A DNA stretch of 64,000 nucleotides from IMGVR_UViG_3300030294_000005:172185-236184; one strand, 5' to 3'; counted from the first letter of the stretch, positions 12,487-63,975 are shown. Notes: a model not told the origin generated them from the letters alone. Numbers and translations: made by a program.

Positions 12487-14670
12487 ATGGCAGATCCAAG
12501 TTTAATTAATAACGTTTTAGAAGCAGGAAAAAGATTAACATCAAAAGAACAAATGTTAGGTAAAGGATTGAATATGCCTTTTAACGCTCTAAATTCAGGA
12601 GCAAGAAAAATAATGTTTTCTACACAGATGGATCATCGTGTAGATTTGTTTAACCCAGAAGCCCCATTAATAAGCACGGGGTATGAAAATAGATTTGGTG
12701 AATATACATCTTCTTTTATCAAATCTGATAGTAGATATATGGTAATTGCTAAGATAGAAAAATTCTCTCATCTTCCAGGGCATCATTATTATTTAGTGTT
12801 AAAGAAGTTTGATAGTGATGAATATGAAATTATTGAGAGAGTAATGTATGAGCATGTTACTGAAGCTTACGGATATCTATATAATACAAAATATATGGAT
12901 CATCTAAAGATTGGAAGTATAGTAGAAACTAATGATGTTATACGAAAAAGCACATCATATGATGAATATGATAATAGAATGGATGGGGTTAATTTAATAA
13001 CAACATATCTATCTAATGAAGATACAAAAGAAGATGGAATTGTAGTAGCAAGGTCTGTAACTGAAAAGTTAGCATGTCCATTAATTAAGACTATCCAAAT
13101 AATAATCAATGATAATGATATACCACTTAATATGTATGGCGATGATAATATATATAAAATAATGCCAGATATAGGAGAGAGCATAAAGAAGGGTATATTG
13201 TGTGCTATGAGAAGAGAGAAAAAAGAAGAATCATTATTTAATCAATCTCTTCAACATCTTCAATCATTAATGATGTCAGATGATAAGTTTATAGCAAAAG
13301 GACAAATTATAGATATAGATGTATACTGTAATAATCCTGAGATATTAAAAGAATCATACTATGCTACACAAATAAAATATTATAGTGATAATAGTTTTAG
13401 ATTTATGAATGATATTGTAAATGTTATTAAACCTATAATAGAAGATAATGTTAATAAGTGTAGTTATGAATTACAGAAAATATATTATGATTGTAAGAAG
13501 ATAGTAGTAGATGGGAAGAAGTATATAAAAGATAAACCATTCTCTAATACTATAATAAATATAACTATATTAGAGAAGAGTGTATTAGCAGTAGGAGATA
13601 AGATATCTAATAGATATGGTGGTAAAGGAGTAGTTTCTAAGATAAGAGAAGATGATCTAATGCCATTATTAAAAGATACAGGTGAGAGGGTTGAAGTAAT
13701 ATTTAATTCAGCAACATGTATAAATAGAGAAAATATAGGTCAATTATTTGAGACATCGCTAAACGATATATCTAATAAATTACTTCATTATATGGAGAAT
13801 GTATTAGATACAGATGAATGTAATGAGATGTATAGAGATTTGGTTTATTTAACTAATAGGGAACAAGGCGAGAAGGTAGATGAATTATTATCTAGATTAT
13901 CTCCTGAAGAACAGCATTATTTCTTTGACTCTGTAATATCAGATAGTGGCATAATGCTTAGTATGAAACCTATAAGTGATCCAATGAATATTGATATGCT
14001 GTCTGCAATATATGATAAATTTCCTTATATAAAACAGCATAAGGTAACAGTGCCACAAAGGGATTCTAATGGTAATGTAAGATATCTAGAAACTAGAAGA
14101 AGATTGACTTGTGGAAAACAATATATCTATAGATTAAAACAATATGCTGAAGAAAAGTTTAGTGCGACTTCACTTTCTTCAACAAATATAAGAAATGAAA
14201 ATAGTAGAAGCTCTGCTAAAAAATCTTATAAAACAATATTTACAAAAACTCCAATAAGATTTGGAGAAATGGAATCTGGAAACTTATTACATCTTGGTGC
14301 AGAAAATGTAGTTATTAACTTATTACTATATTCCGCATCTCCTAAAGGAAGAAGACTTGCTGAAGAATTATTAATTGGTAATCCGTTTGATATAAATGTT
14401 AAATTGGACGACCAATCTACAAATAGAGGTGTTGAAATTCTTAATGCATATTTATTAACAATGGGATTAAGAATAGAATTTGTAAAAACACAAAAAACTA
14501 AAAAAGCACCTATTAAGTTTACACCTATTATAGTTCCAGCAAATAGAACTCCAATACGATTTGTTAATCCAGATGATAAGATGATTAAAGAGTATCTAGA
14601 TAATTTTGGTAAGAAATCAAAATCACCTATTAAATTTGTTCCAATATCATTTGTAGGAAGGACTGATTAA
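12487..14670 (+). CDS. Non-virion RNA polymerase beta subunit, C-terminal half
   Basis: NSGARKIMFSTQ, EDGIVV, GDKISNRYGGKGVVS, RENIGQLFE, YIYRLKQ, PIRFGEME. Confidence 0.92.
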   Translation: MADPSLINNVLEAGKRLTSKEQMLGKGLNMPFNALNSGARKIMFSTQMDHRVDLFNPEAPLISTGYENRFGEYTSSFIKSDSRYMVIAKIEKFSHLPGHHYYLVLKKFDSDEYEIIERVMYEHVTEAYGYLYNTKYMDHLKIGSIVETNDVIRKSTSYDEYDNRMDGVNLITTYLSNEDTKEDGIVVARSVTEKLACPLIKTIQIIINDNDIPLNMYGDDNIYKIMPDIGESIKKGILCAMRREKKEESLFNQSLQHLQSLMMSDDKFIAKGQIIDIDVYCNNPEILKESYYATQIKYYSDNSFRFMNDIVNVIKPIIEDNVNKCSYELQKIYYDCKKIVVDGKKYIKDKPFSNTIINITILEKSVLAVGDKISNRYGGKGVVSKIREDDLMPLLKDTGERVEVIFNSATCINRENIGQLFETSLNDISNKLLHYMENVLDTDECNEMYRDLVYLTNREQGEKVDELLSRLSPEEQHYFFDSVISDSGIMLSMKPISDPMNIDMLSAIYDKFPYIKQHKVTVPQRDSNGNVRYLETRRRLTCGKQYIYRLKQYAEEKFSATSLSSTNIRNENSRSSAKKSYKTIFTKTPIRFGEMESGNLLHLGAENVVINLLLYSASPKGRRLAEELLIGNPFDINVKLDDQSTNRGVEILNAYLLTMGLRIEFVKTQKTKKAPIKFTPIIVPANRTPIRFVNPDDKMIKEYLDNFGKKSKSPIKFVPISFVGRTD

Positions 14671-14671
14671 A

Positions 14672-16960
14672 ATGAATGACATAATAAGGAAAGTTTTAGA
14701 TGAAGTAAGACAAGGGAATAAAACTTTTCTTACTGATTTAGAAACTATGAGTAAGATAAACTCATATGTAGAAATGGTAATAAAATCAAATACACATTCC
14801 AATGATGATATAGAAAATATGAAAGGTATGTTAGAGATTTCTAACATACTTTTTAATAACACAGATAGAGATTTTATATTATTAGAGGATGGGGTATATG
14901 ATTTATTAATTGAAAAATGTAAAAAATATGATCCAAATTATTTAGTAGGAGCAAAACCTGTTTATTTTGCTCCTACAAATAATGACTCATTGACTAAACT
15001 AAAATCAAAAGTTATAAGATTTGTTGATCAAGATAAGATAGATGATATGTTATATGGAAATGATATATTCAAATATGAAGAAATAAAAAGAACTGATATA
15101 TTGAAGAGTCCAATAACATTTAAGAATACTGATGTGATAGCTAAGAGAGTAGTAAATACAAAACATAACTATCCAAAATTAGTAGGGACTTTAGATAAGG
15201 GTAAATTTGTATTAAGTTCTCAAGCAAAAGAAAAAGGTGTATATGATGATAATAATGTAAAAATATTAGAAAGGGATTTCTTTAAGAAACATATAGATGA
15301 TGGAATCTTAGATCCAAATAGAAAGTTCTATATAGTTGCAGAATTAAAATATGATGGAATTTCTGTTGAAGGAGATGTTACAAATCAGATAGAAGGAGGA
15401 AGAACTAGAGGAGATACAAATGAAGATATTGCAGCTGACCTAACTCCTATATTAAGAGGTTATAGATTTAGATATGCTCCAATGATAGATGAAGCTTTTG
15501 GGATGAAATTTGAAGCTATAATGACTCATAATAATTTAGCAAAATATAATGTAATCAAACAGAAAGATTATAAGAATTGTAGAACTGCTATCTCTGGATT
15601 ATTTGCATCGTCTGATGCTCCACAGTTTAGAGACTTTATAACATTAGTACCTTTAGCAACTTCTATAGAAGACATTGATAGACTTTCTGAAATAGAATTT
15701 ATGAATAAGTATTACAATTCTGGAGAAAGATTAAGATATTCAGTATTGTATGGTAACTATGTAGATATACTATTTCAGATAAAGAAATTTGTAGAAGAGG
15801 CAGAATATCTTAGACCATATATGCCTTTCATGTATGATGGAGTAGTGATATCTTATATAGAACCAGATCTCATAGATAAACTTGGAAGAGTAAATTCTGT
15901 TAATAAATATTCAATGGCAGTAAAATTTAATCCACTTAAGAAACAAGCAATATTTATAGAATACAGATATACCGTAGGCCAAGATGGTGTAATAACTCCT
16001 ATGATTTATTATACTGCAGTAGAGTTTTATGGCACAACACACAATCATTCTTCTGGTCATTCATATGAAAGATTTAGAACTTTGGCTTTAAGAAAAGGTG
16101 ATATAATAGATGTAGAATATGTGAATGATGTTATGCCATATGTATCAAAACCAGATAATTCACATAATCTAGAAAATACAAATCCAGTTGAAGTATTTCC
16201 TACAAAATGTCCTTCATGCGGAATAGTGCTAGAAATATCTGAATCAGGTAAATCTGCATTATGTTCTAATATGGCATGTAAGCAAAGAAATATAGCTAGA
16301 ATAGTGAGTATGTTAAAGAAATTAAATGTTAAAGATTTCTCAGATGCTTATTTGTTACAGATAGGTAAATATACATTATCGGATATGATGAATCTATCTG
16401 TAGATGAAATACAATTCTTAGGAGAGATTACTTCACAAAAGTTTATAGAAAGAATGAATCAATTAAAATTACAACCTATATATGATTATAAGATTATAGG
16501 AAGTCTTGGATTTACAGATATAGGTGTTAGAAAATGGAAGTTAATATTAAATAAATATACATTAGATGAGATACTATCTTTTACAGAAGAGCAACTAAGA
16601 GATGCTTTATTAAATATAAAAGGTATAGGTCCAGCTACTGTAGATACTATAGTATCAGAATTTAAATTCTTTAAGGCAGATATAGATACTATACTTAAGA
16701 TGCCTAATATACTAAAGTCTAAAGGAGTTAAGTCGGGTAAGTCTATAAGATTTACTGGATTTAGAAATGAAGAATTAGTAAATACTTTAAATGATATGGG
16801 ATATGATGCAAATGGAGATAGTGGTGTTACAAAATCAACAGATATATTATTAGTTCCATTTGAAGGTTACACTAGTCCTAAGACAGTTAAAGCATCAGCT
16901 AATAATATTATGATAATTCCTATAAATGATTTTACTAATAATATGGATAAGTATTTATAA
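14672..16960 (+). CDS. ligA: NAD-dependent DNA ligase
   Basis: ELKYDG adenylation motif, TRGD, DGVV, AVKF, VGQDGVITP, Cys4 Zn finger, HhH KGIGPA, BRCT-like IRFTG. Confidence 0.93.
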   Translation: MNDIIRKVLDEVRQGNKTFLTDLETMSKINSYVEMVIKSNTHSNDDIENMKGMLEISNILFNNTDRDFILLEDGVYDLLIEKCKKYDPNYLVGAKPVYFAPTNNDSLTKLKSKVIRFVDQDKIDDMLYGNDIFKYEEIKRTDILKSPITFKNTDVIAKRVVNTKHNYPKLVGTLDKGKFVLSSQAKEKGVYDDNNVKILERDFFKKHIDDGILDPNRKFYIVAELKYDGISVEGDVTNQIEGGRTRGDTNEDIAADLTPILRGYRFRYAPMIDEAFGMKFEAIMTHNNLAKYNVIKQKDYKNCRTAISGLFASSDAPQFRDFITLVPLATSIEDIDRLSEIEFMNKYYNSGERLRYSVLYGNYVDILFQIKKFVEEAEYLRPYMPFMYDGVVISYIEPDLIDKLGRVNSVNKYSMAVKFNPLKKQAIFIEYRYTVGQDGVITPMIYYTAVEFYGTTHNHSSGHSYERFRTLALRKGDIIDVEYVNDVMPYVSKPDNSHNLENTNPVEVFPTKCPSCGIVLEISESGKSALCSNMACKQRNIARIVSMLKKLNVKDFSDAYLLQIGKYTLSDMMNLSVDEIQFLGEITSQKFIERMNQLKLQPIYDYKIIGSLGFTDIGVRKWKLILNKYTLDEILSFTEEQLRDALLNIKGIGPATVDTIVSEFKFFKADIDTILKMPNILKSKGVKSGKSIRFTGFRNEELVNTLNDMGYDANGDSGVTKSTDILLVPFEGYTSPKTVKASANNIMIIPINDFTNNMDKYL

Positions 16961-18241: not shown

Positions 18242-18916
18242 ATGTTTTTGCATACGAGTTTATTTTTAATAAAAAGGTGGATGATTATATATATGGACAA
18301 AGCGAGAATAAATAATAAAATATATGATATCATTACTGATGACGAATATAAGAATAATAAGAATTTGTATGATCCTTCATTCACTGCAATAAAGAAAGAA
18401 GGAACAATATATCCGTTAAGAAAAAAGAAAGATACAAGTCCAGGGTACTATGATTTAGGAGTAATAGGATTTTATGTTTCTCCATCAGATGATGAAAAAG
18501 ATTTATATAATAGTATAAATAGTATAAACTTTTCTGACTCTAAATCTATTAAAGATATAATAGAGAAGAGTGATAACTTAAAAGAAATTGAAAAAGATAT
18601 ATTAACTACAGCAGATAATATATTTATTCCTAAGATAAAAGAAAACGATGAACCTGAAATGATTGCACTTAAGGAGTCAGTCATTTCTAAGAATATAGAC
18701 ATTGGTAATTACGAACATAGGTTTGGAGGAAAATATAATAATGATATCAGAATTTTTCAAGACAATAGTATAACTTTATTTAAGTTAAAGAAATTTGCTG
18801 ATGCATTAGACTTGAAGTGTACATTAACAATAGAAGATAAAAATCCAGATGTTGCAAATCCTATGAATAGAGCTGTGACAGTTGTATTAAACGATGGAGA
18901 TGATATTGATGAATGA
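18242..18916 (+). CDS. hypothetical protein (possible C-terminal HTH-like segment)
   Basis: Real start probably MDKAR (about 18293); ITLFKLKKFADALDL resembles the end of an Xre-type HTH. Confidence 0.6.
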   Translation: MFLHTSLFLIKRWMIIYMDKARINNKIYDIITDDEYKNNKNLYDPSFTAIKKEGTIYPLRKKKDTSPGYYDLGVIGFYVSPSDDEKDLYNSINSINFSDSKSIKDIIEKSDNLKEIEKDILTTADNIFIPKIKENDEPEMIALKESVISKNIDIGNYEHRFGGKYNNDIRIFQDNSITLFKLKKFADALDLKCTLTIEDKNPDVANPMNRAVTVVLNDGDDIDE

Positions 18917-20642
18917 TGACATAACTCAAAGAAATTTCATCAAATATTTTACTGATGAAAATAGAGAACATTTTAATGAACAATTATTTTATAGAAATGA
19001 AGATGATATAATAGAAGATATTAAGAAGGTTATATTATCATGTCAGAGAAGCAGATACTTTGTTTTAAGAGTTCATCAATTTAAAGTAGTAGATGATTAT
19101 AATGAGATTATGCAAATCTTATATAATTATGAAGAAAATCTAAATAGGAACAAGACTAAGAAGAGAGATAATCAATATGATTTTGTAGACTTAAAAGTTA
19201 CAGATATGAAATTATTGATAGTGACTTATTATATAGAAGCTAAAGAAAAATTTGAATATGTTGATGTCATTATAGCAGTTCCTAGAATAGTTAATAAGTA
19301 TTACTTTAGAATATCTGGAAATATATATTCAGCATTGTTTCAGTTAGTAGAGAGTACTTATAATAGTTCAACTTCAGCAGCTTCAAGAAAAGATAATATT
19401 ACATTAAAAACAATATTTATGCCTATTAGAATATATAGAAATAATGTATCCTTATTGACAACTTCTAATGAGGATGTAAAATGTGTATTCTATACAATAA
19501 GAGTATTTAATAAATCTTTCAATTCAGTAAAGCCATTCTTAGCAAGAGGTGGATTTTATAATGGTATGGCATATTTAGGATTGAAGTATATTTCAATAAC
19601 AGAAACAGATCCTAATGATAAAGATTTATATACTTTTGAAAAACATGGCCTATTTGTAAGTGTACCGAGATATATATTTGATAGTGATGCATATACACAA
19701 TCGTTTGTATATGGATTAATTGCCGCAATAAATAAAGAATGCACATATTCAAATATATTCTCTAAATACTATTGGCTTAAAATGTTAGGTGAAGATTTTA
19801 ATAATTCTAGTGTGGATAAAGGAGTATCAATATTAGATTCTTTAGAGTCAGTATATGATATATTGACAAAAGAAAGTCTTCATCTTCCAGAATATCAGAA
19901 ACAAAATATTTATGATATTCTAAAATGGTTATTAAGAGAATTTTCAAATCTAAAATCTAAAGATAATTTAGATGTTACTGTAAAAAGAATAAGGTTCTCA
20001 GAATATATTGCATCGCTGTATGCAATGAAACTATCTACTGGTATCTATAGAATATCGGATAATAGAAGGAAGAATATAAACATAGATAGTATAAAGAGAA
20101 TAATAAGAATACCACCTATGTATCTTATAAGTGCAATAACTAAATGTAATTTAGTAAACTATAGAAATTTGGTTAATGATTTAGATTCTACTTTAGCTTT
20201 AAAATATTCTAGAAAAGGTATTTCTGGAATGGGAGATCAGAGTAGTAAATCAGTACCTAAAATATACAGATATATAGATTCGTCTAGTATAGGTATATTT
20301 GATTTAGATGATTCACCTAAATCCGACCCAGGAATATCTGGTACAATAAGTCCATTAGTTAAATTAAGTAATTGGTCTTTTTCAGATTATAGTGAACCAA
20401 ATGAATGGGAAGCTGGATTTAAAGATTTGACAAAGAACTATAAAGCATTAGTTGGTAAGAAAGAAGTAATAACTCTTCAAAAAGAATTATTAGATATAGA
20501 AAATGAAGAGTTAGAAAATATAGTAGATGACTCTATATATGCTGTAAAAGAATTAATGTCAGCTATAAGATTTATAGAAGATGATGTTATTGAAGATACA
20601 GACATAGATCCTAATATGGTTGAAGAGGAGGATTTATTATAA
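18894..20642 (+). CDS. Non-virion RNA polymerase beta subunit, N-terminal half
   Basis: AVPRIVNKYYFRISG (cf. RpoB IP....GTFIING), KYSRKGISG, YRYIDSS..G..DLDDSPKSDPGISG (cf. RDVHP.HYGR.CP.ETPEGPNIGL). Confidence 0.82.
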   Translation: MEMILMNDDITQRNFIKYFTDENREHFNEQLFYRNEDDIIEDIKKVILSCQRSRYFVLRVHQFKVVDDYNEIMQILYNYEENLNRNKTKKRDNQYDFVDLKVTDMKLLIVTYYIEAKEKFEYVDVIIAVPRIVNKYYFRISGNIYSALFQLVESTYNSSTSAASRKDNITLKTIFMPIRIYRNNVSLLTTSNEDVKCVFYTIRVFNKSFNSVKPFLARGGFYNGMAYLGLKYISITETDPNDKDLYTFEKHGLFVSVPRYIFDSDAYTQSFVYGLIAAINKECTYSNIFSKYYWLKMLGEDFNNSSVDKGVSILDSLESVYDILTKESLHLPEYQKQNIYDILKWLLREFSNLKSKDNLDVTVKRIRFSEYIASLYAMKLSTGIYRISDNRRKNINIDSIKRIIRIPPMYLISAITKCNLVNYRNLVNDLDSTLALKYSRKGISGMGDQSSKSVPKIYRYIDSSSIGIFDLDDSPKSDPGISGTISPLVKLSNWSFSDYSEPNEWEAGFKDLTKNYKALVGKKEVITLQKELLDIENEELENIVDDSIYAVKELMSAIRFIEDDVIEDTDIDPNMVEEEDLL

Positions 20643-20643: not shown

Positions 20644-20868
20644 ATGATAAAATATTTTATATTTTCAAGAGAACAATTAAACATGAAAAGAAACGTCGCT
20701 AAAAAGATAAGCCAGGAATATACACCTGGCTCTGTATTTATGGGAAATAAACCAAAAGAATTTACTGATATGATAGATGACCCGAAGTTAGCAAAGTTCT
20801 CCGATTCTATTGTAATTATCAGTGGTGATCCAACTACTATTAAATATAAAGCAGGAAGTGATTTCTAA
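20644..20868 (+). CDS. hypothetical protein
   Basis: GGAGG RBS, start at MIKYF. Confidence 0.6.
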   Translation: MIKYFIFSREQLNMKRNVAKKISQEYTPGSVFMGNKPKEFTDMIDDPKLAKFSDSIVIISGDPTTIKYKAGSDF

Positions 20869-21173
20869 TGTGTAAGAAAGTTATATCAATACTTGGTCCT
20901 ACTGAATGCCCACATTGTCACTCTGCTTTAGTGCTATATAGGGAACAAACAACATCAGTTGGTTTAGATAAAAATGGAAATGGTATACCAACTGATAATA
21001 ATATGTTTGAATATGAGGAAGTATTAAAATGTGAAAATTGTTTTAGTAAATTTCCATGTATACAATTATCTAATGGTAGATATACAATCTATACTGATTT
21101 ACAGATGAGACTAGATATATATAGAACTGTAGCAAGTATAAATAGAGTAAGAAGTCCATTTATAAGGAGTTGA
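20868..21173 (+). CDS. Zn-ribbon protein
   Basis: CPHC ... CENC. Confidence 0.65.
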   Translation: MCKKVISILGPTECPHCHSALVLYREQTTSVGLDKNGNGIPTDNNMFEYEEVLKCENCFSKFPCIQLSNGRYTIYTDLQMRLDIYRTVASINRVRSPFIRS

Positions 21174-21177: not shown

Positions 21178-21780
21178 ATGAATATAGAATTTAAAACTAT
21201 GTTTAATGTAATATATGGTAGATTGTTTGGAGACTTTCAAGCTTTAACAACTGAGATTCATCCAGATATATTAAAAATAATAAAAGTTACTCATGGTAAA
21301 ACATTGGATGGAAAAATGTTTTCATTAAAACTTGAGAATGGTGTAGATATTTATATAATAAAAGAATTAAATTCTTTTATATATATGAATAGTCTGTTCG
21401 TAGATAATAAAAGATCTGTGGTATGTAGTATACCATATGACTTATATAATTACGATCAAAAAGAAATAGTAAAAATAATTAAATCGCTATACACATATAT
21501 TTGTAATCAATTGATTACAAAACCAGGAGATACATTATATAATAAAATTACAAGTATAGCTCCCACAATATTAACATTTCATACATTAAGACATGTATGT
21601 GAAGATTTAGAAATAGTTGATTTTATAGATAATGATGATAACTTTAAAGAAATAACGGTAGAAGTTTTATATGATTCATTAGACTATTCTATAAATGAAC
21701 TATTAGATTACTGTGGAATATTTGCAATCTGTACTGAGAAAATAGAAAAAGAAGTTAATGATGAAGATAAAGACGATTAG
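21178..21780 (+). CDS. hypothetical protein
   Basis: AAGGAG RBS; operonic. Confidence 0.65.
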   Translation: MNIEFKTMFNVIYGRLFGDFQALTTEIHPDILKIIKVTHGKTLDGKMFSLKLENGVDIYIIKELNSFIYMNSLFVDNKRSVVCSIPYDLYNYDQKEIVKIIKSLYTYICNQLITKPGDTLYNKITSIAPTILTFHTLRHVCEDLEIVDFIDNDDNFKEITVEVLYDSLDYSINELLDYCGIFAICTEKIEKEVNDEDKDD

Positions 21781-22051
21781 TTTTAAGCGTCAAGATCATT
21801 GTGTAAAATGTAATGCAGATAGATCCATAGAGCTATATGATATATATGATAAACCAATAAATTATTCATATTTTCTAGATAGATTAAATAGCGTAAGTTT
21901 AGATAGTTTTAATCGACGAGAGTTATCTTATATGCAATGCAAAAAATGTGGTGTTGTATATGATATAACTTGGGAGAATAAAATACCAGAACCATTGATT
22001 AATAAGAATACACTATTCATATTTTTGAATAGTGTATTTAAAAAAATATAA
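21758..22051 (+). CDS. Zn-finger protein
   Basis: CVKC ... CKKC; N-terminal KTISF. Confidence 0.65.
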   Translation: MMKIKTISFKRQDHCVKCNADRSIELYDIYDKPINYSYFLDRLNSVSLDSFNRRELSYMQCKKCGVVYDITWENKIPEPLINKNTLFIFLNSVFKKI

Positions 22052-49411: not shown

Positions 49412-49430
49412 TTAAATACACCTCCTATTA

Positions 49431-50159: not shown

Positions 50160-50187
50160 ACGGAAATCACCTCGATAAAATTATTTT

Positions 50188-50901
50188 TTATACAATCTCT
50201 TCAAACCAAACATCACCAATTTGTTGAGTAGTTGGTTCAACTGTTCCAATAGTGATATTAGTTTTTGAAGACCAACTAGCTTTTTGAATTACAGTAACAA
50301 ATTGTTTAACATCAGATTCTACAATATCTATAGCAGCATGTGTATGATCAGTTGGATCAAATTTTAATGGTTTATCAATAATATTTGCCCATTCTAATTT
50401 AACATTTGCCCAATCTGCATCGGCCATAATAACCCAAGCAGCACCATCATAAATATAAGTATCTCCAGTAACAGTTTCAAAACATCTATCAGCTTCTAAT
50501 GTTCCAGTAAGTGCTAATCTTGCAACACTATCTGCAACTACAAATACTCTAGCTTTATTACCATCTGGATATTGTGCTATTAATAATTTTCCATTAACGT
50601 CCAAAGAAGCATAGCCATTAGCAGCTCCTTTATTTGCAACATTCTCAGGAGTAAATCCAATAGCAGCAACTACAGCAGCATTAGTTATCTCAGCTTTAAT
50701 AGAATCAGTAATACCAGCTAATTTAGCTTTTTCTTCATTAGTATAATCATTAACTGAAAGACCCTTTCCAGTTACTTTATCAACTTTAGTAAGTAATAAA
50801 TCCGTAAGTCCTATTACGTTTTCTGGTTTAGTCTCTGGGAAAATAACATCATACCCACCTACACCATTTTTAATTTTTAAACGAATATTCTTATCTGACA
50901 T
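50188..50901 (-). CDS. tail fibre protein
   Basis: KVDKVTGKGLSVNDYT, GFTPENVANKGAANGYASLDVNGKL, W.NI.DKP and HTH motifs typical of Firmicute phage fibres. Confidence 0.7.
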   Translation of the reverse strand: MSDKNIRLKIKNGVGGYDVIFPETKPENVIGLTDLLLTKVDKVTGKGLSVNDYTNEEKAKLAGITDSIKAEITNAAVVAAIGFTPENVANKGAANGYASLDVNGKLLIAQYPDGNKARVFVVADSVARLALTGTLEADRCFETVTGDTYIYDGAAWVIMADADWANVKLEWANIIDKPLKFDPTDHTHAAIDIVESDVKQFVTVIQKASWSSKTNITIGTVEPTTQQIGDVWFEEIV

Positions 50902-52711: not shown

Positions 52712-55042
52712 TTAGCATTTATTCCATCCACAATTATAGCATTGAATACATCCAGATACATGGTCTAGTTTTGTTCCACATTCAGGACATATATTTTTTT
52801 GTAAAGCTTCAGTCATAGATAACTTCTTTTCTTTTATTTTATTTTTTTCTTCATCTGTTTTTTTATGCTTTATTATAATATCAGAATCAGAACCTTTATT
52901 TTTCATTTCCATTTCTAATATTCTAGCCATAGCATCTGGACATGAAAGTCCATCTAATTCTTTTCCATTATGTTGACAAGCAGCACATGTTATTCCTTTC
53001 AATTGATCTACAGCATCTTCTACAGAAACTCCTCTTCTAAAAGCTAATGAAGTCATTCTACTTAATGCCTCAACATTAGCTTTACATAATCCATTTTTTA
53101 TATTTACAAATGTTTCAACTACTTGATTATTATCTGGATTTTTATTTAAAGTCATATAGAATGTACCACATCCTGATCTAGCAGAATAAGTATTACCTGA
53201 TAATCTTCTTCCAAAATCTTTTCTAGATTTTTTAATAAACTTTTCTTTTTCAACTTTAGGTTCTTCCAATGAAGTAGTTAATGTTTGACCTTCTCTACAT
53301 CCATCTCTATATACAGTTAATCCTTTACATCCTGTTTTCCAACCTAGTTCTATTATAGAAGATATCTCTTTTACAGTTGCAGAATTAGCAAAGTTTATAG
53401 TTTTGCTTATTGATAAATCAACATATTTTTGAAATTCAGCAACTACATACACATGATCTTCTGGAGATATATCATGTGCTGTAACAAATAGATCCTGCAT
53501 ATCTAACGGTATCTCATCAATACCAACACATGAACCATGATTATCTGCAACTTTCTTTAATATTTGATCATTGAATAATCCTCTATTTCTTAATTCACGT
53601 TCAAATATTGAATTTGTATAGAAGTATATATTTCCATTATTAGTTTTTCTATAATATGCTAAAGCAAATTCAGGTTCTATCCCACCAGATACTCCAGCTA
53701 AAGCTGATAATGTACCATTTGGGGCTATAGATATTAGATTAGAGTTTCTTATTTTTATGCCTTTCTTAGCCCAGACACTACCTTCCCATTTAGGATATAC
53801 ACCTCTAGTTATAGCAAGTTCAACAGATGATTCAACACTATTAGATTCTATTCCTTTCATTAATTGATCTATGAAAGCAATACATTCTGGATTATTTCCA
53901 TATCTTATACCCAAATTATATAATGCAGATCCAAATCCCATAACCCCTAATCCTATAGGTCTCAAATCTTCTGTCATTTGTTGTATTTCTGCTAATGGTA
54001 ATTTATTTGTAGCTACCATATCATCAAGCCATCTTATAGCATTTTTTGTATATTTAAAGAATTCTTCAAATTTAAACATATGATTATCATCAATAAATTC
54101 AACCATATTTATACTTGCTAAATTACAACTTGTCCAAGGAATATTAGAAAATTCATTACATGGATTAGTAAATACCCTTCTTCCTATATGAGGGTTTTTA
54201 TTAGCTCTATCCATAGTATCTTGATAATTAAATCCTGGATCACCTATCTTCCAAGCAGCCTCATCTATAAATTTCTTTAAATCTCTAGCTCTAACTGTTT
54301 CATATACTTTTATAGGATATCCTTTGCCTTTCCAAGCGTCTAAATCTCCATCCCATTCAGCATCATATATTACTTTATCCATATGCTCATAATCAGGAAA
54401 TACTAAATCCCATGGTTCATCATTCTCTACTTTTTTCATAAATTCATCAGACAATGATACTGATATATTCATTAATGTAAATTCAGTAGGTAAAGCGTTA
54501 ACCTTTAAATTTATAAAATCTTTTATATTTGGATGCCACATATCCATATTTATTTTTATAGCACCACGTTTTGAATAGTTTGCAATAGTCATTGCAGATG
54601 CTGCTTCATTATATACTCTCATAAAGTATGTTGGTCCACAACTATATCCATTACTCTTCTCAACTCTTGCACTCTTTGGTCTTAATACTGATATATTAGC
54701 AACGCCGACTCCACCACTTTTTTGAAATATCTTTGCCATTTTTGCTACAGCTCCAAATACACTCTCTATATTATCTCTAATATCAATTATAAAACATGAA
54801 CTATATTGACCTGGATCTTCTGGATTTGCATTTATTAAACAAGGTGAACTAAATATAAATTTCATATTTATCATTGCATCATAAATTTCTTTTTGAGCAA
54901 TTATAGCATCTTCTTTAGTTAATTCTCCTTGTGATATCGTTTTAGAAACTCTATCTGCAATATCTTCCCACGTTGTTTCCCCATCTCTAAAATATCTTTT
55001 CTCTTCTAATATTTTTAGTCCATTTTCAGTTATCTGTCCCAT
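52712..55042 (-). CDS. nrdJ: Class II (adenosylcobalamin-dependent) ribonucleotide reductase
   Basis: FSSPCL, SSCF, SGGVG, TNPCNEF, CNLASIN, RPIGLG, IAPNGT, YRDG; C-terminal SCPD domain and Zn ribbon; no beta subunit gene nearby. Confidence 0.9.
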   Translation of the reverse strand: MGQITENGLKILEEKRYFRDGETTWEDIADRVSKTISQGELTKEDAIIAQKEIYDAMINMKFIFSSPCLINANPEDPGQYSSCFIIDIRDNIESVFGAVAKMAKIFQKSGGVGVANISVLRPKSARVEKSNGYSCGPTYFMRVYNEAASAMTIANYSKRGAIKINMDMWHPNIKDFINLKVNALPTEFTLMNISVSLSDEFMKKVENDEPWDLVFPDYEHMDKVIYDAEWDGDLDAWKGKGYPIKVYETVRARDLKKFIDEAAWKIGDPGFNYQDTMDRANKNPHIGRRVFTNPCNEFSNIPWTSCNLASINMVEFIDDNHMFKFEEFFKYTKNAIRWLDDMVATNKLPLAEIQQMTEDLRPIGLGVMGFGSALYNLGIRYGNNPECIAFIDQLMKGIESNSVESSVELAITRGVYPKWEGSVWAKKGIKIRNSNLISIAPNGTLSALAGVSGGIEPEFALAYYRKTNNGNIYFYTNSIFERELRNRGLFNDQILKKVADNHGSCVGIDEIPLDMQDLFVTAHDISPEDHVYVVAEFQKYVDLSISKTINFANSATVKEISSIIELGWKTGCKGLTVYRDGCREGQTLTTSLEEPKVEKEKFIKKSRKDFGRRLSGNTYSARSGCGTFYMTLNKNPDNNQVVETFVNIKNGLCKANVEALSRMTSLAFRRGVSVEDAVDQLKGITCAACQHNGKELDGLSCPDAMARILEMEMKNKGSDSDIIIKHKKTDEEKNKIKEKKLSMTEALQKNICPECGTKLDHVSGCIQCYNCGWNKC

Positions 55043-55394: not shown

Positions 55395-55955
55395 TTACAA
55401 AATAATTTGATCATTAAAATATTTATTAGATAAGACTTCTACAGGAATAAATATTATTCTAAATGGAATATCTATACCTAATATGTAATCAGTTCTATCT
55501 TGTAATGAATTGAAAATTTTAATGTATATATCTTCTTTAAGATTAAAATCTTTTATAAAAGATTCTTTCTGTATTTTTTCTTTATTTAAATTATAATAAA
55601 GAGTTTTTGTAGATATTATTAGTGCACTTTTTAGTTCAAAATCCTCTAGCTTTTTTATAGTTTCTAATCTTACTTTTTTGCCATACTCTTCATCAACATA
55701 TTTTATACAAGCCATTTTATAATAATCTTCTTCAGCAATTGATACCATATCATCAATCAAACCTTCTAACAGCAATTTATAAAATACTATAGGAGTATGG
55801 ACATAAATCTCTGCAACATTAACGCCATTAAAAGATATAACCTTATACTCTTTTTCAATTTCTTCATTAATACCATAACTATGATTTATTTCTTTAATCC
55901 GCTGTCCTAACCCTTCTATTTTTACATACTGTTCAATTTCCATCATATTAATCAA
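55395..55955 (-). CDS. hypothetical (putative early) protein
   Basis: AAGGAG RBS; GATTATATATTAT at 55991-56003 (-). Confidence 0.65.
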   Translation of the reverse strand: MINMMEIEQYVKIEGLGQRIKEINHSYGINEEIEKEYKVISFNGVNVAEIYVHTPIVFYKLLLEGLIDDMVSIAEEDYYKMACIKYVDEEYGKKVRLETIKKLEDFELKSALIISTKTLYYNLNKEKIQKESFIKDFNLKEDIYIKIFNSLQDRTDYILGIDIPFRIIFIPVEVLSNKYFNDQIIL

Positions 55956-56558: not shown

Positions 56559-56954
56559 TTATTCTTTTTTATCAAACGATATTACTTTAAGCTTCATTTC
56601 CTCAATACCTTTTTCTATCATAGTATCAAAATTAATAAATTTTACATCTTTATTTGATATTAGAAATGCACTAGCATCTAAAGAGTTTAATTTTTCACTA
56701 CCTATTTCTTTTACTACTAAGATTTCATCATCTAATAAAAGTTTTTGAATACTAGTTATAACTTTAAGATCATCATCATCAGATTGTAAATCTATTATTC
56801 CATCACAAGAAAACATAGCTTTTGAACTATCATCAATATCTCTTCCAAATATAATAATATTACTAGACGGTATAGATTCTACAAGTTCTATATATGCATC
56901 TATATCTTTAACACCTACAGAATTTGATAAAGTTTTTCCATAATAATCAGCCAT
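56559..56954 (-). CDS. hypothetical protein
   Basis: AAGGAG RBS; C-terminal KVISF. Confidence 0.65.
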   Translation of the reverse strand: MADYYGKTLSNSVGVKDIDAYIELVESIPSSNIIIFGRDIDDSSKAMFSCDGIIDLQSDDDDLKVITSIQKLLLDDEILVVKEIGSEKLNSLDASAFLISNKDVKFINFDTMIEKGIEEMKLKVISFDKKE

Positions 56955-57845: not shown

Positions 57846-58274
57846 GTGTTATATATGAAGAATATGGAAGATTTAGAGATTGTTAAAAGGTATAAAGATA
57901 CTGCTACTAGAATGATACATTTATCTTTTCCAACATTATCTAGTGTAGAATTGAATGATGCTATCAACTATTCTATTTTAAAAAGATGTAAAAACTCAGA
58001 AGCTATTATAGAGAATAATTATCAAAATAAAAATATAAATACTACAGTATTAGAAATGGCAGAATACATACTTACTAGAGAACCAATAATTACAGCATTT
58101 GGAGTTTTATTTAAGAAGCATGGAACAGTGCCTAACCCTCTAGCAAAGATGATTCAATCATTTATGGATGGTAGAGGAATTCATAAAAATGAGATGTTTA
58201 AATATCCAAAAGGATCAGAAGAGTTTGAAAAATATAATTTATTACAATTACTAGATAAATTAGATGCTAACGCT
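57846..58274 (+). CDS. Split family-B DNA polymerase part 2, exon 1
   Basis: Ends [10 protein letters not shown], the first half of motif B (K...N..YG); AACA-N6-TA at 57816-57827. Confidence 0.85.
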
Positions 58275-59567
58275 TAAATATGAGGTGCGTTATACAGTAA
58301 TGTATAATTGAAAACTCTGTGAACTGCTGGGAGTCCCTAAGAGCTTAATATACTACAACGTGATCTGTAAAGATGAGCGTGAATGTGGTCGAAAGACAGA
58401 AAGAAATATTAAGATAAGGTATGGTGAGAATCCTAACTCTTATAAACAATGGGTAATCATAGCAGCCAAGCTGCCAATTATAATAAAAGATGATATATCA
58501 CTAACTTTATATTTATTAAGAGGTGATATTAATGAAAATTATTAGTTTTTTAAATAAAGAAGACGAAATGCCTATATATTGGTATAAATTAAACTGTGAT
58601 AATATTAAGGATAATTTATATGAAATATCAGAAACATCTGAAATTAGATCTGCTAAAACAAAGAAAATATTAAAACAAAGAAATCATAAATCTAGAAGTA
58701 GTAGTTATAAAGACATAGCATTAAGTACAAATATTATTAAAGGTAAAAGTTTTTTAGTTCATAGATTAGTAGCTAAAACTTTCATTCCTAATCCATACAA
58801 TAAACCTGAAGTAAATCATAAAAATTATGATACAAAGAAAAACTATTGTGATAATTTAGAATGGATGACACATAAAGAAAATGTAGAATATTCTAAAAAT
58901 AATATAAAAAGAGGAGAAGATAATATAAATTCATCTTTAACAAATGATCAGGTTTATAAAATATGTAATATGCTACAAGAAAATAAATCTTATAGTGAAA
59001 TATTATTTAATATAGGAATGGAAGATAGTGATAATAATAGAGATACTGTAGGTAATATTAAACGAGGTATAACTTATAAAAATATATCTAAACAATTTAA
59101 CTTATCTAATGCTAATGCAAAATCTTCTAAATATGATATAAATACAATTAGAGATATATGTAGATATATATTTAATGGATATGACTATATAAAAATAGCA
59201 GAATTAATAAATGAGGATATTTCAGATATAAATAAAAAGAAATCATTTTATGAATTTATTCGTCTTATTAAAAATAGAAAAAATTATAAAGATATATCAT
59301 CTGAATATAATTGGTAGAAGGTTCAACGACTATCGAAAGCTATAAATCCATAAGAACTATTAATTTAGCAGGGTTGAAAATAAGGTATAGTAATGTATAC
59401 ACGAAGTGAGTAGAGTACACTAGAAGTCTAGTGGAAGTGCAGAGCGTCCTAGTAAAATAGGATGAAGATATAGTCTCTTCTTCGTATGAAAGTACGAGCA
59501 TTCTAAATAAATGATATATAGTGAGAGTATAATATTCATTATACAACGACTATATAGTAAGATTAAG
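58275..59567 (+). mobile_element. Group I self-splicing intron in DNA polymerase motif B
   Basis: 5' exon ends in U and pairs aacgcu/ggugcguu (P1); core elements gaactgctggga, gttcaacgacta (59321) and gaagatatagtct (59464); terminal G at 59567; splicing restores KLDANA|LYGSIG in frame. Confidence 0.9.
58532..59317 (+). CDS. Intron-encoded HNH homing endonuclease (NUMOD4/HNH type)
   Basis: YEISETSEIRS, VHRLVAKTFIPNP, VNHKN..KKN...NLEWMT..EN; GAGGTG RBS. Confidence 0.9.
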   Translation: MKIISFLNKEDEMPIYWYKLNCDNIKDNLYEISETSEIRSAKTKKILKQRNHKSRSSSYKDIALSTNIIKGKSFLVHRLVAKTFIPNPYNKPEVNHKNYDTKKNYCDNLEWMTHKENVEYSKNNIKRGEDNINSSLTNDQVYKICNMLQENKSYSEILFNIGMEDSDNNRDTVGNIKRGITYKNISKQFNLSNANAKSSKYDINTIRDICRYIFNGYDYIKIAELINEDISDINKKKSFYEFIRLIKNRKNYKDISSEYNW

Positions 59568-61241
59568 TTATATGGATCAATTGGTCAAGTATCTTGCTTA
59601 TATTATAATGTTAATATTGCATCATCTGTTACAGTTCAAGGTAGATCATGTATATCAACAGCAATGCTTCAATTTGAAATGTTTCTAGCAAATAATTCTA
59701 ATTTTGGATCTCTTAATGAAGTAATTACATTTATAGATAATATAGTTACTGAAAAAAGAGAATATTCTGATAGATTAATATTAGATAATGATATAACTAT
59801 GACTGAAAGTTTTAATAAGGTAATGATGACTTGTGGATTTGATTATATACCATCAGAGGAAGATCTATTAATAGTATGGGAAATATTTGGTAGATTAAAA
59901 CAAGAAGACTGGAATAGATTATATTATAAGAATAATCTATATGATTTTGTAAATAATAGATCTATGACAAATGCATTAATTTATATATTAACAGAATTAC
60001 ATGAACCATTCTTAGATCCAAATGATGTACCATCAGAAATAAAAGTAGAGTTAGATGAATTTTTATCATTTCTAAAAGAATACGTTTATTATTCATATCA
60101 GATAATAGATAGATTAGATAAAGCAGAAAATATGATAAGAAAAGTAGTAGCTCTAGGAGATACTGATTCAAATATAGTTTCATTAGATGCATGGTATAGA
60201 TTTACATTAGATAAAGTAGTGGACATACCAATGGCTATTAAAAAGAAAAAATTAAAAGCAATTTCTTTTTTAGAAACTGATGAATTCGGAGATTCTGATA
60301 AATTAAAAGTAATAGATTTTGTTGAAGATGATAGAGATTATGATTTTAAGAATGATGAGATTATAAGTATTCATAAAAGTATGAATGTATTAAGTATTAT
60401 CCCTCAAGAAGGAGTAAGATATTCTATAATAAATATTATGGCATATTGTCTATATAAATTAATTAATGACTACATGTGTAAATATACACAGAATTCTAAT
60501 TCATATGATCCAAAGAAAAAATGTTTACTTATTATGAAAAACGAATATTTATTTAAACGTGTATTATTAACCCTTGCTAAGAAGAATTATGCAACAATTC
60601 AAGAATTACAAGAAGGTAAATTCTTAAATGGATTATTAGATATAAAAGGATTGCCTATAGCTAAAACTACATTAAATATTAAGACTCAAGAAAAGCTACA
60701 AGAGATTTTATTTGAAGATGTATTAAATTCAGATGAGATAGATCAATTAAGAGTTTTAAAAGATTTAGCTAAAGTAGAGAAAGAAATATTTGATTCTTTA
60801 TTAAGTAAGAATAAAGAATATTATAAACCATTAACTATAAAGTCTATGAATAGTTATGATGATCCATTTAGATTAAGTGGAATAAAAGCAAGTTATGTTT
60901 GGAATGTATTAAGATATGATAATATAGCAGCTATTGATTTAGAAGTTAGAAATAATATAGATGTTATAAAAGTTGATATAACTCAAAAGAATGTAGAAAA
61001 GATAAAAGAATTATATCCAGATGTTTATGATAAAATAATACCATTACTTAAAGAAAAACCTTTTATAAAAGGAATAACAGCAATGGCAGTCCCAAAGAAT
61101 AGCGAGTTACCAGATTGGACATTAGAGTTTATAGATTATCCAACAATAATAAATGATAATCTTAAGAACTTTCCATTAGAGTCTATTGGATTATGTAAAA
61201 TGAATGATACAAATAATTATAGTAATATATTAAAACTATAA
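59568..61241 (+). CDS. Split family-B DNA polymerase part 2, exon 2
   Basis: LYGSIG, VTVQGR, motif C GDTDS, MKNEY, KKNYA, IKGL. Confidence 0.9.
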   Translation, partial: LYGSIGQVSCLYYNVNIASSVTVQGRSCISTAMLQFEMFLANNSNFGSLNEVITFIDNIVTEKREYSDRLILDNDITMTESFNKVMMTCGFDYIPSEEDLLIVWEIFGRLKQEDWNRLYYKNNLYDFVNNRSMTNALIYILTELHEPFLDPNDVPSEIKVELDEFLSFLKEYVYYSYQIIDRLDKAENMIRKVVALGDTDSNIVSLDAWYRFTLDKVVDIPMAIKKKKLKAISFLETDEFGDSDKLKVIDFVEDDRDYDFKNDEIISIHKSMNVLSIIPQEGVRYSIINIMAYCLYKLINDYMCKYTQNSNSYDPKKKCLLIMKNEYLFKRVLLTLAKKNYATIQELQEGKFLNGLLDIKGLPIAKTTLNIKTQEKLQEILFEDVLNSDEIDQLRVLKDLAKVEKEIFDSLLSKNKEYYKPLTIKSMNSYDDPFRLSGIKASYVWNVLRYDNIAAIDLEVRNNIDVIKVDITQKNVEKIKELYPDVYDKIIPLLKEKPFIKGITAMAVPKNSELPDWTLEFIDYPTIINDNLKNFPLESIGLCKMNDTNNYSNILKL

Positions 61242-61574: not shown

Positions 61575-61617
61575 TATATTGTAAGAATTAATGTATAATT
61601 AATGAAAGGAGATAAAT

Positions 61618-61887: not shown

Positions 61888-61908
61888 ACTAAAAGAGGAG
61901 CGTTTTAA

Positions 61909-63975
61909 ATGTTAGAAAATCTTAATAACTATGGTCCTTATGCAGAATTGGTAAAGAATAAAAAGATGAAAGTTTATACAAAGGATTTTAATAAAGATAA
62001 TATAGATAATCACTTCTTTTGGATATTAAATATATTTAGAGATGGGATTGAAACTGATGAAGTTCAAAAAGCTTTTGTAAATGTTGAATTTAATAATGCT
62101 GTAAATATAGATTTAACTTTACAAGATTTACTCTTTAATGTACTTATGTGGGATATAATAGTTAAATCAGATATGATAATAGAACCAAAGCATTTATTCT
62201 TTGGAAAATCTATAACACAAAATAGTATTAAGAAATATGTTGATGTATATTTCTTAGAAGAGAAAAGAAAATCTACATCTAATATAAAACTAAATAACAT
62301 GATAGATGATATGATGTTTAAATGGTGTTATATAGATGAGTTTAACGGCTATCTATCAAATACAATAAATTTAGAAGACTTCATTAAACTAATGAAAGAG
62401 AATAGTGAATTCAATAGATTAATACATGCAGATTTAACTGGTACTCCAGTTGAAGAAGTAAAAGCAGTAGGAATGGAATATGCTAATAAGATGATAGATA
62501 TAATACAAAAATCAGATCATTGTTTAGCAGATTTCTTTAATGCTGGCGAAGGTGTAAATCCAAAACAATTTAAAGAAGTAGCAATCAATATAGGAACTAA
62601 ACCAGATGGTAGAGGTGGGGTATATCCTACATTGATAAATACGAACTTTTTAACTGGTGGAGTAAATGATACATTATCATTCTTTATAGAAGAGTCTGGT
62701 GGTAGAGTTGCACAGATTATAGTAGAAGGTAATGTAGGTATTTCAGGATACTTTGCAAGATTGTTAGGACTTAATAATATAGATACTATAATGTATCCAG
62801 ATCATAATTATGTGTGCGATACTAAGAATTTTGAAGAAATATTTATAACTAATGCAATAGTGCAGTCTAAATTTGAAAATAGATATTATAGACTTAGTCC
62901 TAATGGACAAGAATATCTATTGAAAAATACTACCAAAGATCTAGTTGGAAAGAAAATATATCTACGTTCCCCAATGACTTGTGCTTCACATGCTTCAGGT
63001 CATGGGATATGTTATAGATGTTATGGAGATTTAGCATATACAAATAATGATATCAATATAGGAAAAATAGCAGCAGAAGAAGTATCTTCTACACTTACTG
63101 GAAGAATGCTTCAAGCTAAACATCTATTAGAATCTGCAGTAAAAGTATTTAAGTGGCCAGCTGAATTTAATAGATTCTTTGATTTAGATTATGATATTAT
63201 AAAAGTAACTTCAGACGATTCTGTAAACTTAAATAATTATAAATTATTAATAGATAATATTAGTTTGCAAAGTGAATATGAAGATGTAGAATATAATGAA
63301 TACGTTACTAAATTTGAAGTATTATCACCTACTGGTGAAATATTTAATATCCATACTCAAGATGCTGATGAACTTTATATAACATCTGAGTTGAATACAA
63401 TAATAAGAGATAAAGCTACTGAGATAGATGGAAAGGTAGCAGTAGATTTTAAAGATTTATATGAAGCTCCATTGTTTATATTAGAGATTCAGAATTATGA
63501 TCTATCAGCTACATTAAAAGCAATAAAAGATATTATTGATAAAACCGATATAACAAACAACTTAAACAGAAATGATATCCTACAACGATTAGTAGAGACG
63601 TTTATAGAGGGTGGAATCAATGTAATGTCCATTCATGGTGAAGTAATATTAAGTAATCAATTAAGAAATGTAGATAATATATTAGAAAAGCCAGAATGGA
63701 AATATCCAAATGAACCATACAATCTATTGACATTAAAACAATCACTATCAAATAATCCATCTATTATAGTATCATTATCATATGAAGGATTATCGAAAAT
63801 GTTATATAATCCTTTGACTTATAGAAAGAACAAACCTTCCTTTATGGATTTATTCTTCATGAAACGCCCCTCAGCCTATCTATCTGGTAAGGATGCGGTT
63901 AAAAAATATAAAGATGATGGATATATAGAAAAAGATAATAAGAAAGTTATAAGATTTGTAGAAGATCCTAAATAA
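61909..63975 (+). CDS. Non-virion RNA polymerase beta' subunit, C-terminal half
   Basis: Bridge helix GGR...SGYFARLL, Zn site RSPMTC...GICYRCYG, trigger loop IGKIAAEEVSSTLTGRMLQAKH, HGEVILSNQLR. Confidence 0.9.
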   Translation: MLENLNNYGPYAELVKNKKMKVYTKDFNKDNIDNHFFWILNIFRDGIETDEVQKAFVNVEFNNAVNIDLTLQDLLFNVLMWDIIVKSDMIIEPKHLFFGKSITQNSIKKYVDVYFLEEKRKSTSNIKLNNMIDDMMFKWCYIDEFNGYLSNTINLEDFIKLMKENSEFNRLIHADLTGTPVEEVKAVGMEYANKMIDIIQKSDHCLADFFNAGEGVNPKQFKEVAINIGTKPDGRGGVYPTLINTNFLTGGVNDTLSFFIEESGGRVAQIIVEGNVGISGYFARLLGLNNIDTIMYPDHNYVCDTKNFEEIFITNAIVQSKFENRYYRLSPNGQEYLLKNTTKDLVGKKIYLRSPMTCASHASGHGICYRCYGDLAYTNNDINIGKIAAEEVSSTLTGRMLQAKHLLESAVKVFKWPAEFNRFFDLDYDIIKVTSDDSVNLNNYKLLIDNISLQSEYEDVEYNEYVTKFEVLSPTGEIFNIHTQDADELYITSELNTIIRDKATEIDGKVAVDFKDLYEAPLFILEIQNYDLSATLKAIKDIIDKTDITNNLNRNDILQRLVETFIEGGINVMSIHGEVILSNQLRNVDNILEKPEWKYPNEPYNLLTLKQSLSNNPSIIVSLSYEGLSKMLYNPLTYRKNKPSFMDLFFMKRPSAYLSGKDAVKKYKDDGYIEKDNKKVIRFVEDPK

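Follow-up and report, generated by a model that had tools for sequence, protein, structure and literature searches.

Gene content of the window and its relatives

The stretch of DNA analyzed here (IMGVR_UViG_3300030294_000005:172185-236184; 64,000 nucleotides), referred to below as the window, forms the terminal 64 kb of an IMG/VR contig of 236 kb, so that 172 kb of this genome fall outside it, and has an overall G+C content of 26% and a proteome in which isoleucine, lysine and phenylalanine are abundant. It encodes replication and transcription proteins of a jumbo phage, and twelve of its proteins carry, mostly close to a terminus or in an insertion, variants of one short hydrophobic peptide, hereafter the tag; proteins bearing it are called clients.

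Gene identities were assigned by Pfam, structure-profile and tblastn searches. Three genes encode subunits of a multisubunit non-virion RNA polymerase (nvRNAP): beta-C (12487-14670), beta-N (18894-20642) and beta'-C (61909-63975, + strand), the last being the orthologue of AR9 g154, the non-virion beta' C-terminal subunit. The beta-N assignment is based on distant tblastn matches and on the AR9 gene order (g105 after the ligase), with no family model. A NAD-dependent DNA ligase, whose adenylation domain starts at residue 204, is located at 14672-16960. Two genes ~28 kb apart encode the family-B DNA polymerase, one its exonuclease-containing part 1 (28163-30091, + strand), the other its catalytic part 2 (divDNApol; 57846-58277 plus 59511-61241, + strand); a split polymerase is also found in AR9 (g132/g152) and in chimalliviruses (DNAP-N/DNAP-C). 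The window further encodes a SbcC-like ATPase, a HNH endonuclease, a tubulin, a UvsX-like ATPase, a ribonucleotide reductase, an endolysin and a block of virion genes.

A megablast search with the region from beta-C to beta-N found no match among 50,697 cultured phage records, and relatives were therefore sought at the protein level. The RNA polymerase (RNAP) beta fragment of the window shares 33% protein identity with g089 of AR9/PBS1, the non-virion RNAP beta C-terminal subunit, and IMG/VR contains dozens of related jumbo-phage contigs with 40-76% identity in the client proteins (L003, L005, L007, L043 and similar designations are labels of the relatives' loci).

Location of the tags

The initial annotation of the window had proposed that a K/P-[VIAP]-I-x-F peptide marks the DNA-acting machinery of the phage, and all peptides on which this was based were recovered at their positions. 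The C-terminal tail of nvRNAP beta-C (residues 674-727; 14506-14667, + strand) contains four tags, APIKF (14506-14520), TPIRF (14548-14562), SPIKF (14623-14637) and VPISF (14638-14652). Homology to AR9 g089 stops at residue 673, and AR9 lacks the tail; a second TPIRF, at residue 588, lies in the conserved core and is no part of it. The ligase carries three tags, KPVYF (14954-14968), KVIRF (15008-15022) and SPITF (15107-15121), in an insertion in its N-terminal part (~residues 95-156; 14954-15139, + strand); this tag-bearing insertion of 57 residues is missing from the AR9 ligase and in relatives holds the lineage's own tag. Single tags are found on the two other RNA polymerase subunits: SAIRF, followed by IEDD, at residue 556 of 582 in the C-terminal extension of beta-N (20559-20573, + strand), and KVIRFVEDPK at the C-terminus of beta'-C (63937-63972, + strand, with the tag itself at 63943-63957). 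Homology to other phages ends by ~residue 513 in beta-N and likewise before the tag in beta'-C, where relatives have TVVKFIEDEED, EPVKFLEDAN and CPIVISEE.

Polymerase part 1 ends in a tail (residues 597-642; 29951-30088, + strand) with three tags, VVLRF (29954-29968), KVISF (29990-30004) and RIIDF (30023-30037). The AR9 protein, of 554 aa versus 642 aa here, lacks this tail. In an AlphaFold model of part 1 built with 20 orthologues, the predicted local distance difference test score (pLDDT) exceeds 90 over most of residues 1-450 and is 33-40 in the tail, which is thus a low-confidence appendage and not a buried core strand; the model also contains a low-confidence stretch at residues 459-520. 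In polymerase part 2 two tags, KAISF (60255-60269) and KVIDF (60306-60320), lie in an insertion after the DTDS motif (60246-60335, + strand), separated by a turn-like DEFGDSD. The insertion is conserved in L003, and L005, a genome with PIxI-type tags, reads QPIYK and PIKVIKV at the same positions. The placement of the tagged segments outside the conserved cores, as originally claimed, is therefore borne out by the alignment with AR9, in which they appear as clade-specific additions.

An insert of ~1.2 kb interrupts the gene of polymerase part 2: before it, 57846-58274 shares 77% identity with the N-terminus of the L003 orthologue, where no interruption occurs, and the remainder of the gene is at 59511-61241. 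A Rfam search of the intervening sequence gave no intron family match. Within the interruption lies the HNH endonuclease (58523-59317; HNH_3, NUMOD4), which, as had been noted, is itself tagged, with KIISF at its N-terminus (58535-58549, + strand). The same polymerase gene is interrupted differently in L007.

The remaining tags are on small or uncharacterized proteins. N-terminal tags were found on a small protein at 21758-22051 (KTISF, 21770-21784, + strand), on a small DUF2695-like protein at 26718-27047 (KIISF, 26724-26738, + strand) and on a 311-aa protein at 27091-28026 (KIISF, followed by DD, 28000-28014, - strand), in which the tag is followed by a variable linker and an AT-hook-like KKKRGRPRK. 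Orthologues of the latter have co-varying N-terminal tags (RVISFD, QKAFSYD, RAMTYEP, KPFTRE), and the pairing of such a tag with an AT-hook-like RGRP stretch is a feature of the 27091 family. A 186-aa protein at 55395-55955 has KVISF at residue 38 (55830-55844, - strand; 17.5 bits), and a 131-aa protein at 56559-56954 has a C-terminal KVISF followed by DKKE (56574-56588, - strand), the L003 orthologue of which ends in a tail containing YVDFNE. The small ORF (open reading frame) 20868-21173 carries a candidate weak N-terminal tag, MCKKVISI (20877-20891, + strand), which scores 9.9 bits and has no phenylalanine.

Frequency and placement of the motif

The pattern of the initial annotation, [KP][VIAP]IxF, has 11 matches in the window against 2.25 +/- 1.5 expected, and none of 5000 within-protein shuffles reached 11, so that it is more frequent than composition predicts; plain IxF is not enriched (91 versus 85.5 expected). 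Since this pattern had been defined post hoc, an unbiased scan of every gapped 3-5-letter word was run, with internal repeats removed. The top words shared between proteins were KVIxFV (4 proteins, expected 0.024), KxISF (8 proteins, expected 0.53), KVIxF and IRFxE, and in a family-wise shuffle null 8 of 612 shuffles matched or beat the best word (P ~0.013). With a leave-one-out weight matrix, 11 of the 20 instances reach at least 12 bits, compared with 0.37 such sites per shuffled proteome; the matrix also revealed a longer motif, basic-[VIP]-I-[SRKD]-F-[VILN]-acidic/N-x-D. Among the peptides of the original list, KPVYF and VVLRF have the lowest scores.

In ten of the twelve tagged proteins the tag is located at most 45 residues from a terminus (P 0.0002). 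All twelve belong to the 48 proteins encoded outside the virion block, while none of the 20 proteins inside it is tagged (Fisher P 0.013), in agreement with the earlier remark that terminal copies are not evident on the sheath, tube, fibres or the two virion-RNAP fragments. Three virion-block proteins within 48938-50901 (- strand) have internal matches to the matrix of a moderate 11-12 bits (~3 versus 0.5 expected by chance): KVIYF at residue 45 of 157, STISF at residue 210 of 242 and KPLKF at residue 177 of 237. These could be chance matches or weak real sites. The block also encodes a 448-aa RCC1-type beta-propeller protein with seven repeats (NGQCGTG / VFLLNDGTV; 39942-41288, - strand), which dominated the unbiased word scan and has a homologue in one relative locus only (60% identity).

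Synonymous codons vary among the copies of the tag, with TCA, TCT, TCG and AGT, from both serine codon families, for serine, GTT and GTA for valine, and ATT and ATA for isoleucine. These differences rule out a repeated DNA element as the source of the tags and indicate that the constraint acts on the peptide.

One explanation for these matches would be that the motif is a by-product of an AT-biased proteome rich in isoleucine, lysine and phenylalanine, or of generic beta-strand propensity. The G+C content of 26%, the abundance of these residues and the lack of enrichment of plain IxF are in its favor. Against it, specific words are enriched 5-fold to 40-fold, the tags are restricted in position and, as described in the following section, tag position is conserved while tag sequence co-varies across ~30 genomes. 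The cross-genome controls used there exclude a compositional artefact, and we give this explanation next to no probability.

Lineage-specific tags and their co-variation

Tags were found in ~30 related uncultured jumbo phages at the same positions as in the window, namely the beta-C tail, the ligase insertion, the beta-N end, the tail of polymerase part 1, the insertion of part 2 and the beta'-C end, as well as, with the lineage's own peptide, at the N-termini of the 27091 and 21758 orthologues and at other small-protein termini. The peptide itself differs: the beta-C tails of the relatives contain 2-5 copies of a short hydrophobic peptide that is specific to the lineage (PIxF, PFIH, PMxF, GMxY, VMC, AF[ST], FMxR, K[IV]W, PPFK or PIxI). 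The fixed K/P-[VIAP]-I-x-F definition consequently holds for the lineage of the window and fails for the system as a whole, in which relatives use other peptides. The beta-C tails of L021, L025, L028, L029, L046, L049 and L053 are made up of one or more tags, a conserved helix-like segment (TNIRD..G..DEL...YN.A) and again one or more tags, which suggests that such a tail does not consist simply of separate peptides in a row.

For each genome the tag was derived automatically from the repeats inside its own beta-C tail only. Per 1000 residues, the own-genome tag occurs 5.8 times in the ligase insertion, compared with 0.85 for the tags of other genomes, and 6.1 times versus 0.38 at the beta-N end; the corresponding values are 1.45 versus 0.41 for all other ORF termini and 0.60 versus 0.37 for protein interiors. 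Counted by lineage, the own tag is present on beta-C in 14/14, on the ligase in 14/14 and on beta-N in 9/14 lineages, and near the N-terminus of the 21758 family in 5/10. Co-variation was also seen directly between clients. The beta-C tail and the tail of polymerase part 1 share 3.78 3-mers within a genome versus 1.33 between genomes (permutation P 0.0005, nine non-redundant genomes), and among 30 genomes the beta-C tail co-varies with the ligase insertion (P 0.0001) and the ligase with beta-N (P 0.0017).

As the clients are unrelated to one another, shared ancestry cannot account for the match of their tags within a genome, and the simplest explanation for a peptide that is the same across unrelated proteins of one genome and different in each lineage is one co-evolving common partner. 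The peptides thus very probably represent a shared docking tag that binds such a partner, and the original proposal that one hub recruits clients through a common docking peptide gains support from the co-variation between unrelated proteins over ~30 lineages. According to the mechanism that we propose, the tags would be exposed, extended hydrophobic peptides (K-[VIP]-I-x-F-hydrophobic-acidic) on termini and surface insertions of replication and late-transcription proteins, including both polymerase halves, the ligase, three nvRNAP subunits, the HNH endonuclease, the AT-hook protein and several small proteins. Every copy in a given genome would fit one and the same pocket of a single phage-encoded partner, with which the tags would evolve in concert, so that related phages come to use different peptides at the same positions.

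The fact that all clients of a genome change together would also be expected if there were no hub and the tags paired with each other as short antiparallel beta-strands, zipping their carriers into a replication-transcription assembly with identical, self-complementary tags. The basic flank before and the acidic flank after the hydrophobic core, the turn-like segment between the two tags of polymerase part 2 and the N/D-rich turns between the three tags of part 1 fit such pairing. However, AlphaFold gives no confident sheet for the three-tag tail of part 1 (pLDDT 33-40), many clients have a single tag at their extreme terminus, and the lineage tags VMCK, KVWH and FMxR lack charge symmetry, which together make direct tag-tag pairing improbable.

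The common partner could also be a host factor, such as the host beta clamp, a chaperone or a protease adaptor, the differences between lineages then reflecting different hosts; host clamps and proteases typically bind hydrophobic peptides at protein termini. However, the pocket of the bacterial beta clamp is highly conserved, as are the QL[SD]LF-type peptides that it binds, whereas the tags diverge widely among phages with 45-55% identity in core proteins, and a syntenic phage-encoded gene for a clamp-fold protein, described below, is at hand. A host target is therefore regarded as quite improbable, below direct tag-tag pairing and above a compositional artefact in our order of preference, which is headed, among the rivals of a phage-encoded clamp, by a different hub or a localisation signal.

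Range of clients

The set of clients differs between phages and takes in ADP-ribose metabolism: PARG-like, LPD28-domain and zinc-finger-like small proteins with terminal tags were found among the relatives. In L043, of the AF lineage, the lineage tag is located at the C-terminus of a microbial-type PARG (poly-ADP-ribose glycohydrolase) protein (7400-8272, + strand) and at the N-terminus of a LPD28-domain protein (3892-4239, + strand). Not all DNA-contacting proteins are marked. Across lineages, no tag was found on the UvsX-like recombinase (0/13), the tubulin (0/8), the endolysin (0/5) or several conserved unknowns, the SbcC-like ATPase is tagged in 1/14, and the GyrA-like protein has only a weak internal match to the matrix. 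The large subunit of ribonucleotide reductase (52712-55042, - strand; C-terminal TSCPD domain) is untagged too, as expected of a metabolic enzyme.

This distribution bears on the possibility that the tags direct localisation or import, or that their docking site is another hub, such as the scaffold of a replication-transcription compartment or condensate. Each separately translated piece of the split enzymes (beta-N, beta-C, beta'-C and both polymerase parts) has its own tag, as targeting of individual polypeptides would need; the phage encodes a tubulin; the tagged proteins are diverse, comprising small proteins, the HNH endonuclease, the AT-hook protein and the PARG-like protein of relatives; and the conserved uncharacterized proteins o7590, o17632 and o18242 are present. 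On the other side, a compartment would need the UvsX-like, SbcC-like and GyrA-like proteins, and the scarcity of tags on these, together with their absence from the tubulin and others, weakens the general import reading and disfavors the import gate or compartment that the initial annotation had listed among the possible hubs. No chimallin shell or PicA/Imp factor was recognized among the ORFs of the window, and AR9-like phages have been described as lacking chimallin (PMC13282480). In the PicA/Imp pathway of the Chimalliviridae, cargo is recognized through folded surface patches, and known import into the phage nucleus is stated to do without terminal signals (PMC12908238), whereas the tag described here is linear and terminal. 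We consider a localisation signal or another hub unlikely.

Among the proteins possibly relevant to these alternatives, profile searches of o18242, o17632 and o7590 against PDB sequences gave no significant match, and PHROGs returned nothing useful on ten unannotated proteins of the window, hub candidates included. The region 6370-8483 (+ strand) encodes a tubulin/FtsZ-family protein (28.5 bits, under the Pfam threshold) followed by o7590, a conserved, apparently helical protein of 297 aa that is present in 39/46 relatives' loci; both are untagged. A further, highly conserved protein, o4499 (4499-5230, + strand, 243 aa), was rejected as a hub because it is probably a C-terminal fragment of RNAP beta, presumably of the virion RNAP: the profile of its family gives a weak alignment (best E 0.021) with the C-terminal portion of bacterial RNAP beta. 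It has no tag, its only matches being chance ones to a conserved PFRF.

A candidate hub with a clamp-like predicted fold

The gene at 30095-30646 (+ strand), which starts 4 nt after the stop of polymerase part 1, encodes a protein of 183 aa. No Pfam, PHROG or PDB sequence relative was found for it, and tblastn gave no match in the 50,697 phage records; its family is small and fast evolving, with a median identity of 27.6%. An AlphaFold2 model based on 19 sequences nevertheless has a pLDDT of 89 and a predicted template modelling score (pTM) of 0.86. In a Foldseek search of the PDB its best matches are T4 gp45 (probabilities of 0.99 and 0.96), gp45 with the T4 ligase peptide, E. coli beta clamps and 9-1-1, and clamps make up most of the top 50 structural matches. 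The first matches in BFVD are uncharacterized proteins of uncultured myoviruses with template modelling (TM) scores of 0.76-0.79, followed by annotated T4-type clamps, beta clamps, PCNA and phiKZ-like 'ribonuclease H' proteins; the last may be read as fusions of RNase H to a clamp-derived domain of the Rhc type (PMC13648698). The first of the hub candidates put forward in the initial annotation has thus turned out to have a sliding-clamp-like predicted fold.

The position of the gene is conserved as well. A profile of the family places a member directly after polymerase part 1 in 37/41 relatives' loci, the remaining four including one weak match and two unassigned ORFs of similar size. AR9, which is without tags, has at this position g131, a DnaQ-type exonuclease that is unrelated and was ruled out as a counterpart.

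Fold and synteny make this clamp-like protein the most likely common partner of the tags, at about even odds; its binding to them, like its oligomeric state, is something we infer. It would act as a DNA-bound tool-belt that tethers the polymerase, the ligase, nucleases and the phage RNA polymerase, the latter being connected directly by the tags of three subunits; late transcription would thereby be coupled to replicating DNA, as it is in T4 by gp45 together with gp33 and gp55.

Several observations weigh against this assignment. The similarity to solved clamps is modest (E ~4e-3, TM score on the query (TMq) ~0.4), and hhalign of the family profile against T4 gp45 detects no sequence signal (probability 0.3%), so that the protein is called clamp-like by fold only. 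No clamp loader (RFC, gp44-like) was seen among the annotated ORFs of the 64-kb window, the part of the genome covered here. Each tag class corresponds to a single lineage, which makes co-variation of tag and clamp inseparable from phylogeny, and the co-variation of beta-C with beta-N taken alone is not significant (P 0.18, 30 genomes). Finally, tandem tags with a spacing of 10-12 residues are too close together to occupy different pockets of a single ring; the close spacing of multiple copies might instead serve avidity, rebinding or the formation of a hairpin.

Comparison with known docking systems

Systems in which several proteins bind a clamp or hub by a shared linear ligand are well known, and among them the T4 sliding clamp gp45 is the closest parallel to the arrangement proposed here. 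In T4, the polymerase gp43 carries a gp45-binding peptide at its C-terminus and the ligase carries one in an internal disordered loop; the peptide is also present on gp33 and gp55, through which RNA polymerase is tethered to the clamp in late transcription (PMC6212786, PMC7892883); the clients of T4/RB69 gp45 comprise the gp43 C-terminus, DNA ligase loop 222-247, gp33, gp55 and RNase H. In the window, too, one short hydrophobic peptide is placed on the polymerase C-terminus, in a flexible internal part of the ligase and on the transcription machinery, and a two-domain protein with a predicted clamp fold is encoded near the polymerase, which would imply a similar coupling of late transcription to replication. 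The two systems differ in that the tag is on subunits of the phage's own multisubunit RNAP, whereas T4 uses adaptors on the host RNAP, and in that the tags often come in 2-5 copies, read K-V-I-x-F-V-E-D instead of LDFLF and are replaced wholesale between related phages. The clamp-like protein itself, of 183 aa, has no detectable sequence similarity to gp45. Neither the tags nor the lineage variants GMxY, VMC, FMxR and KVW match a published consensus (LDFLF, QxxLxxFF or QL[SD]LF; PMC6212786).

With the PIP-box (PCNA-interacting peptide) and beta-clamp motifs (QxxLxxFF; QL[SD]LF) the tags have in common that a short hydrophobic peptide lies in a terminus or loop outside the catalytic core, and that one motif is shared by many unrelated DNA-transaction proteins of one genome, such as polymerases, ligase, nucleases and PARG. 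PIP-box and beta-clamp motifs dock into one hydrophobic clamp pocket, hence the tool-belt idea, and are conserved over very large distances, while the tag lacks a glutamine anchor and changes between phages that are ~50% identical. The herpesvirus proteins UL42 and UL44, which have a clamp fold, bind a family-B polymerase by the very end of its C-terminal tail and may do so without forming a loader-dependent ring. These processivity factors have a single client, compared with a dozen here, including RNA polymerase.

Another comparison is with Rhc of chimalliviruses, a RNase H fused to a clamp-derived domain (PMC13648698, a 2026 preprint). Its clamp domain binds DNAP-C, is recovered on purification together with DNAP-N, DNAP-C and three nvRNAP subunits, and is required for late transcription; Rhc reportedly acts as a polymerase subunit via a folded interface, with no linear motif reported (PMC13648698). 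These phages, too, are jumbo phages in which both the family-B polymerase (DNAP-N/DNAP-C) and the nvRNAP are split; the clamp-like protein of the window differs from Rhc in standing alone, and its proposed clients have an explicit linear tag in common.

According to two recent reviews and publications on import, the cargo of chimalliviruses lacks a terminal signal, and nothing comparable is described there for AR9-like phages; a targeted literature search for clamp-binding motifs on jumbo-phage RNAPs found only the Rhc preprint (PMC13648698). What is new here is the direct tagging of a phage multisubunit RNAP, the presence of several copies per client, and the wholesale, lineage-specific replacement of the tag over a dozen clients.

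Implications for jumbo-phage biology

As a more speculative and rather doubtful extension, the tags may constitute a private, fast-changing address code that arose in a clade of uncultured AR9-like jumbo phages. Docking on a single hub would be licensed by the peptide of the lineage for the phage RNAP, the split polymerase, the ligase and nucleases of accessory or selfish nature, and transcription would thus be wired physically to the replisome. If this were true, its rapid turnover would isolate the machineries of co-infecting relatives from each other or aid escape from host decoys. Should the hub prove to be a compartment gate or scaffold, the tag would be the first example of a linear signal that targets proteins to a replication compartment of a phage.

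If the docking of the tags is confirmed, networks of clamp or hub docking would extend to phage multisubunit RNAPs, with late transcription coupled directly to replication without the adaptors of T4, complementing the 2026 finding that the clamp-derived domain of Rhc serves both replication and transcription in chimalliviruses (PMC13648698). The relatives would then provide a natural experiment in the co-evolution of motif and pocket, dozens of genomes having rewritten the tags of the same dozen clients, with a specificity that is testable by tag swaps. With the tag as a simple sequence rule, the interactome of replisome and transcription could also be predicted for uncultured jumbo phages, down to the small unknown proteins and homing endonucleases that take part in it.

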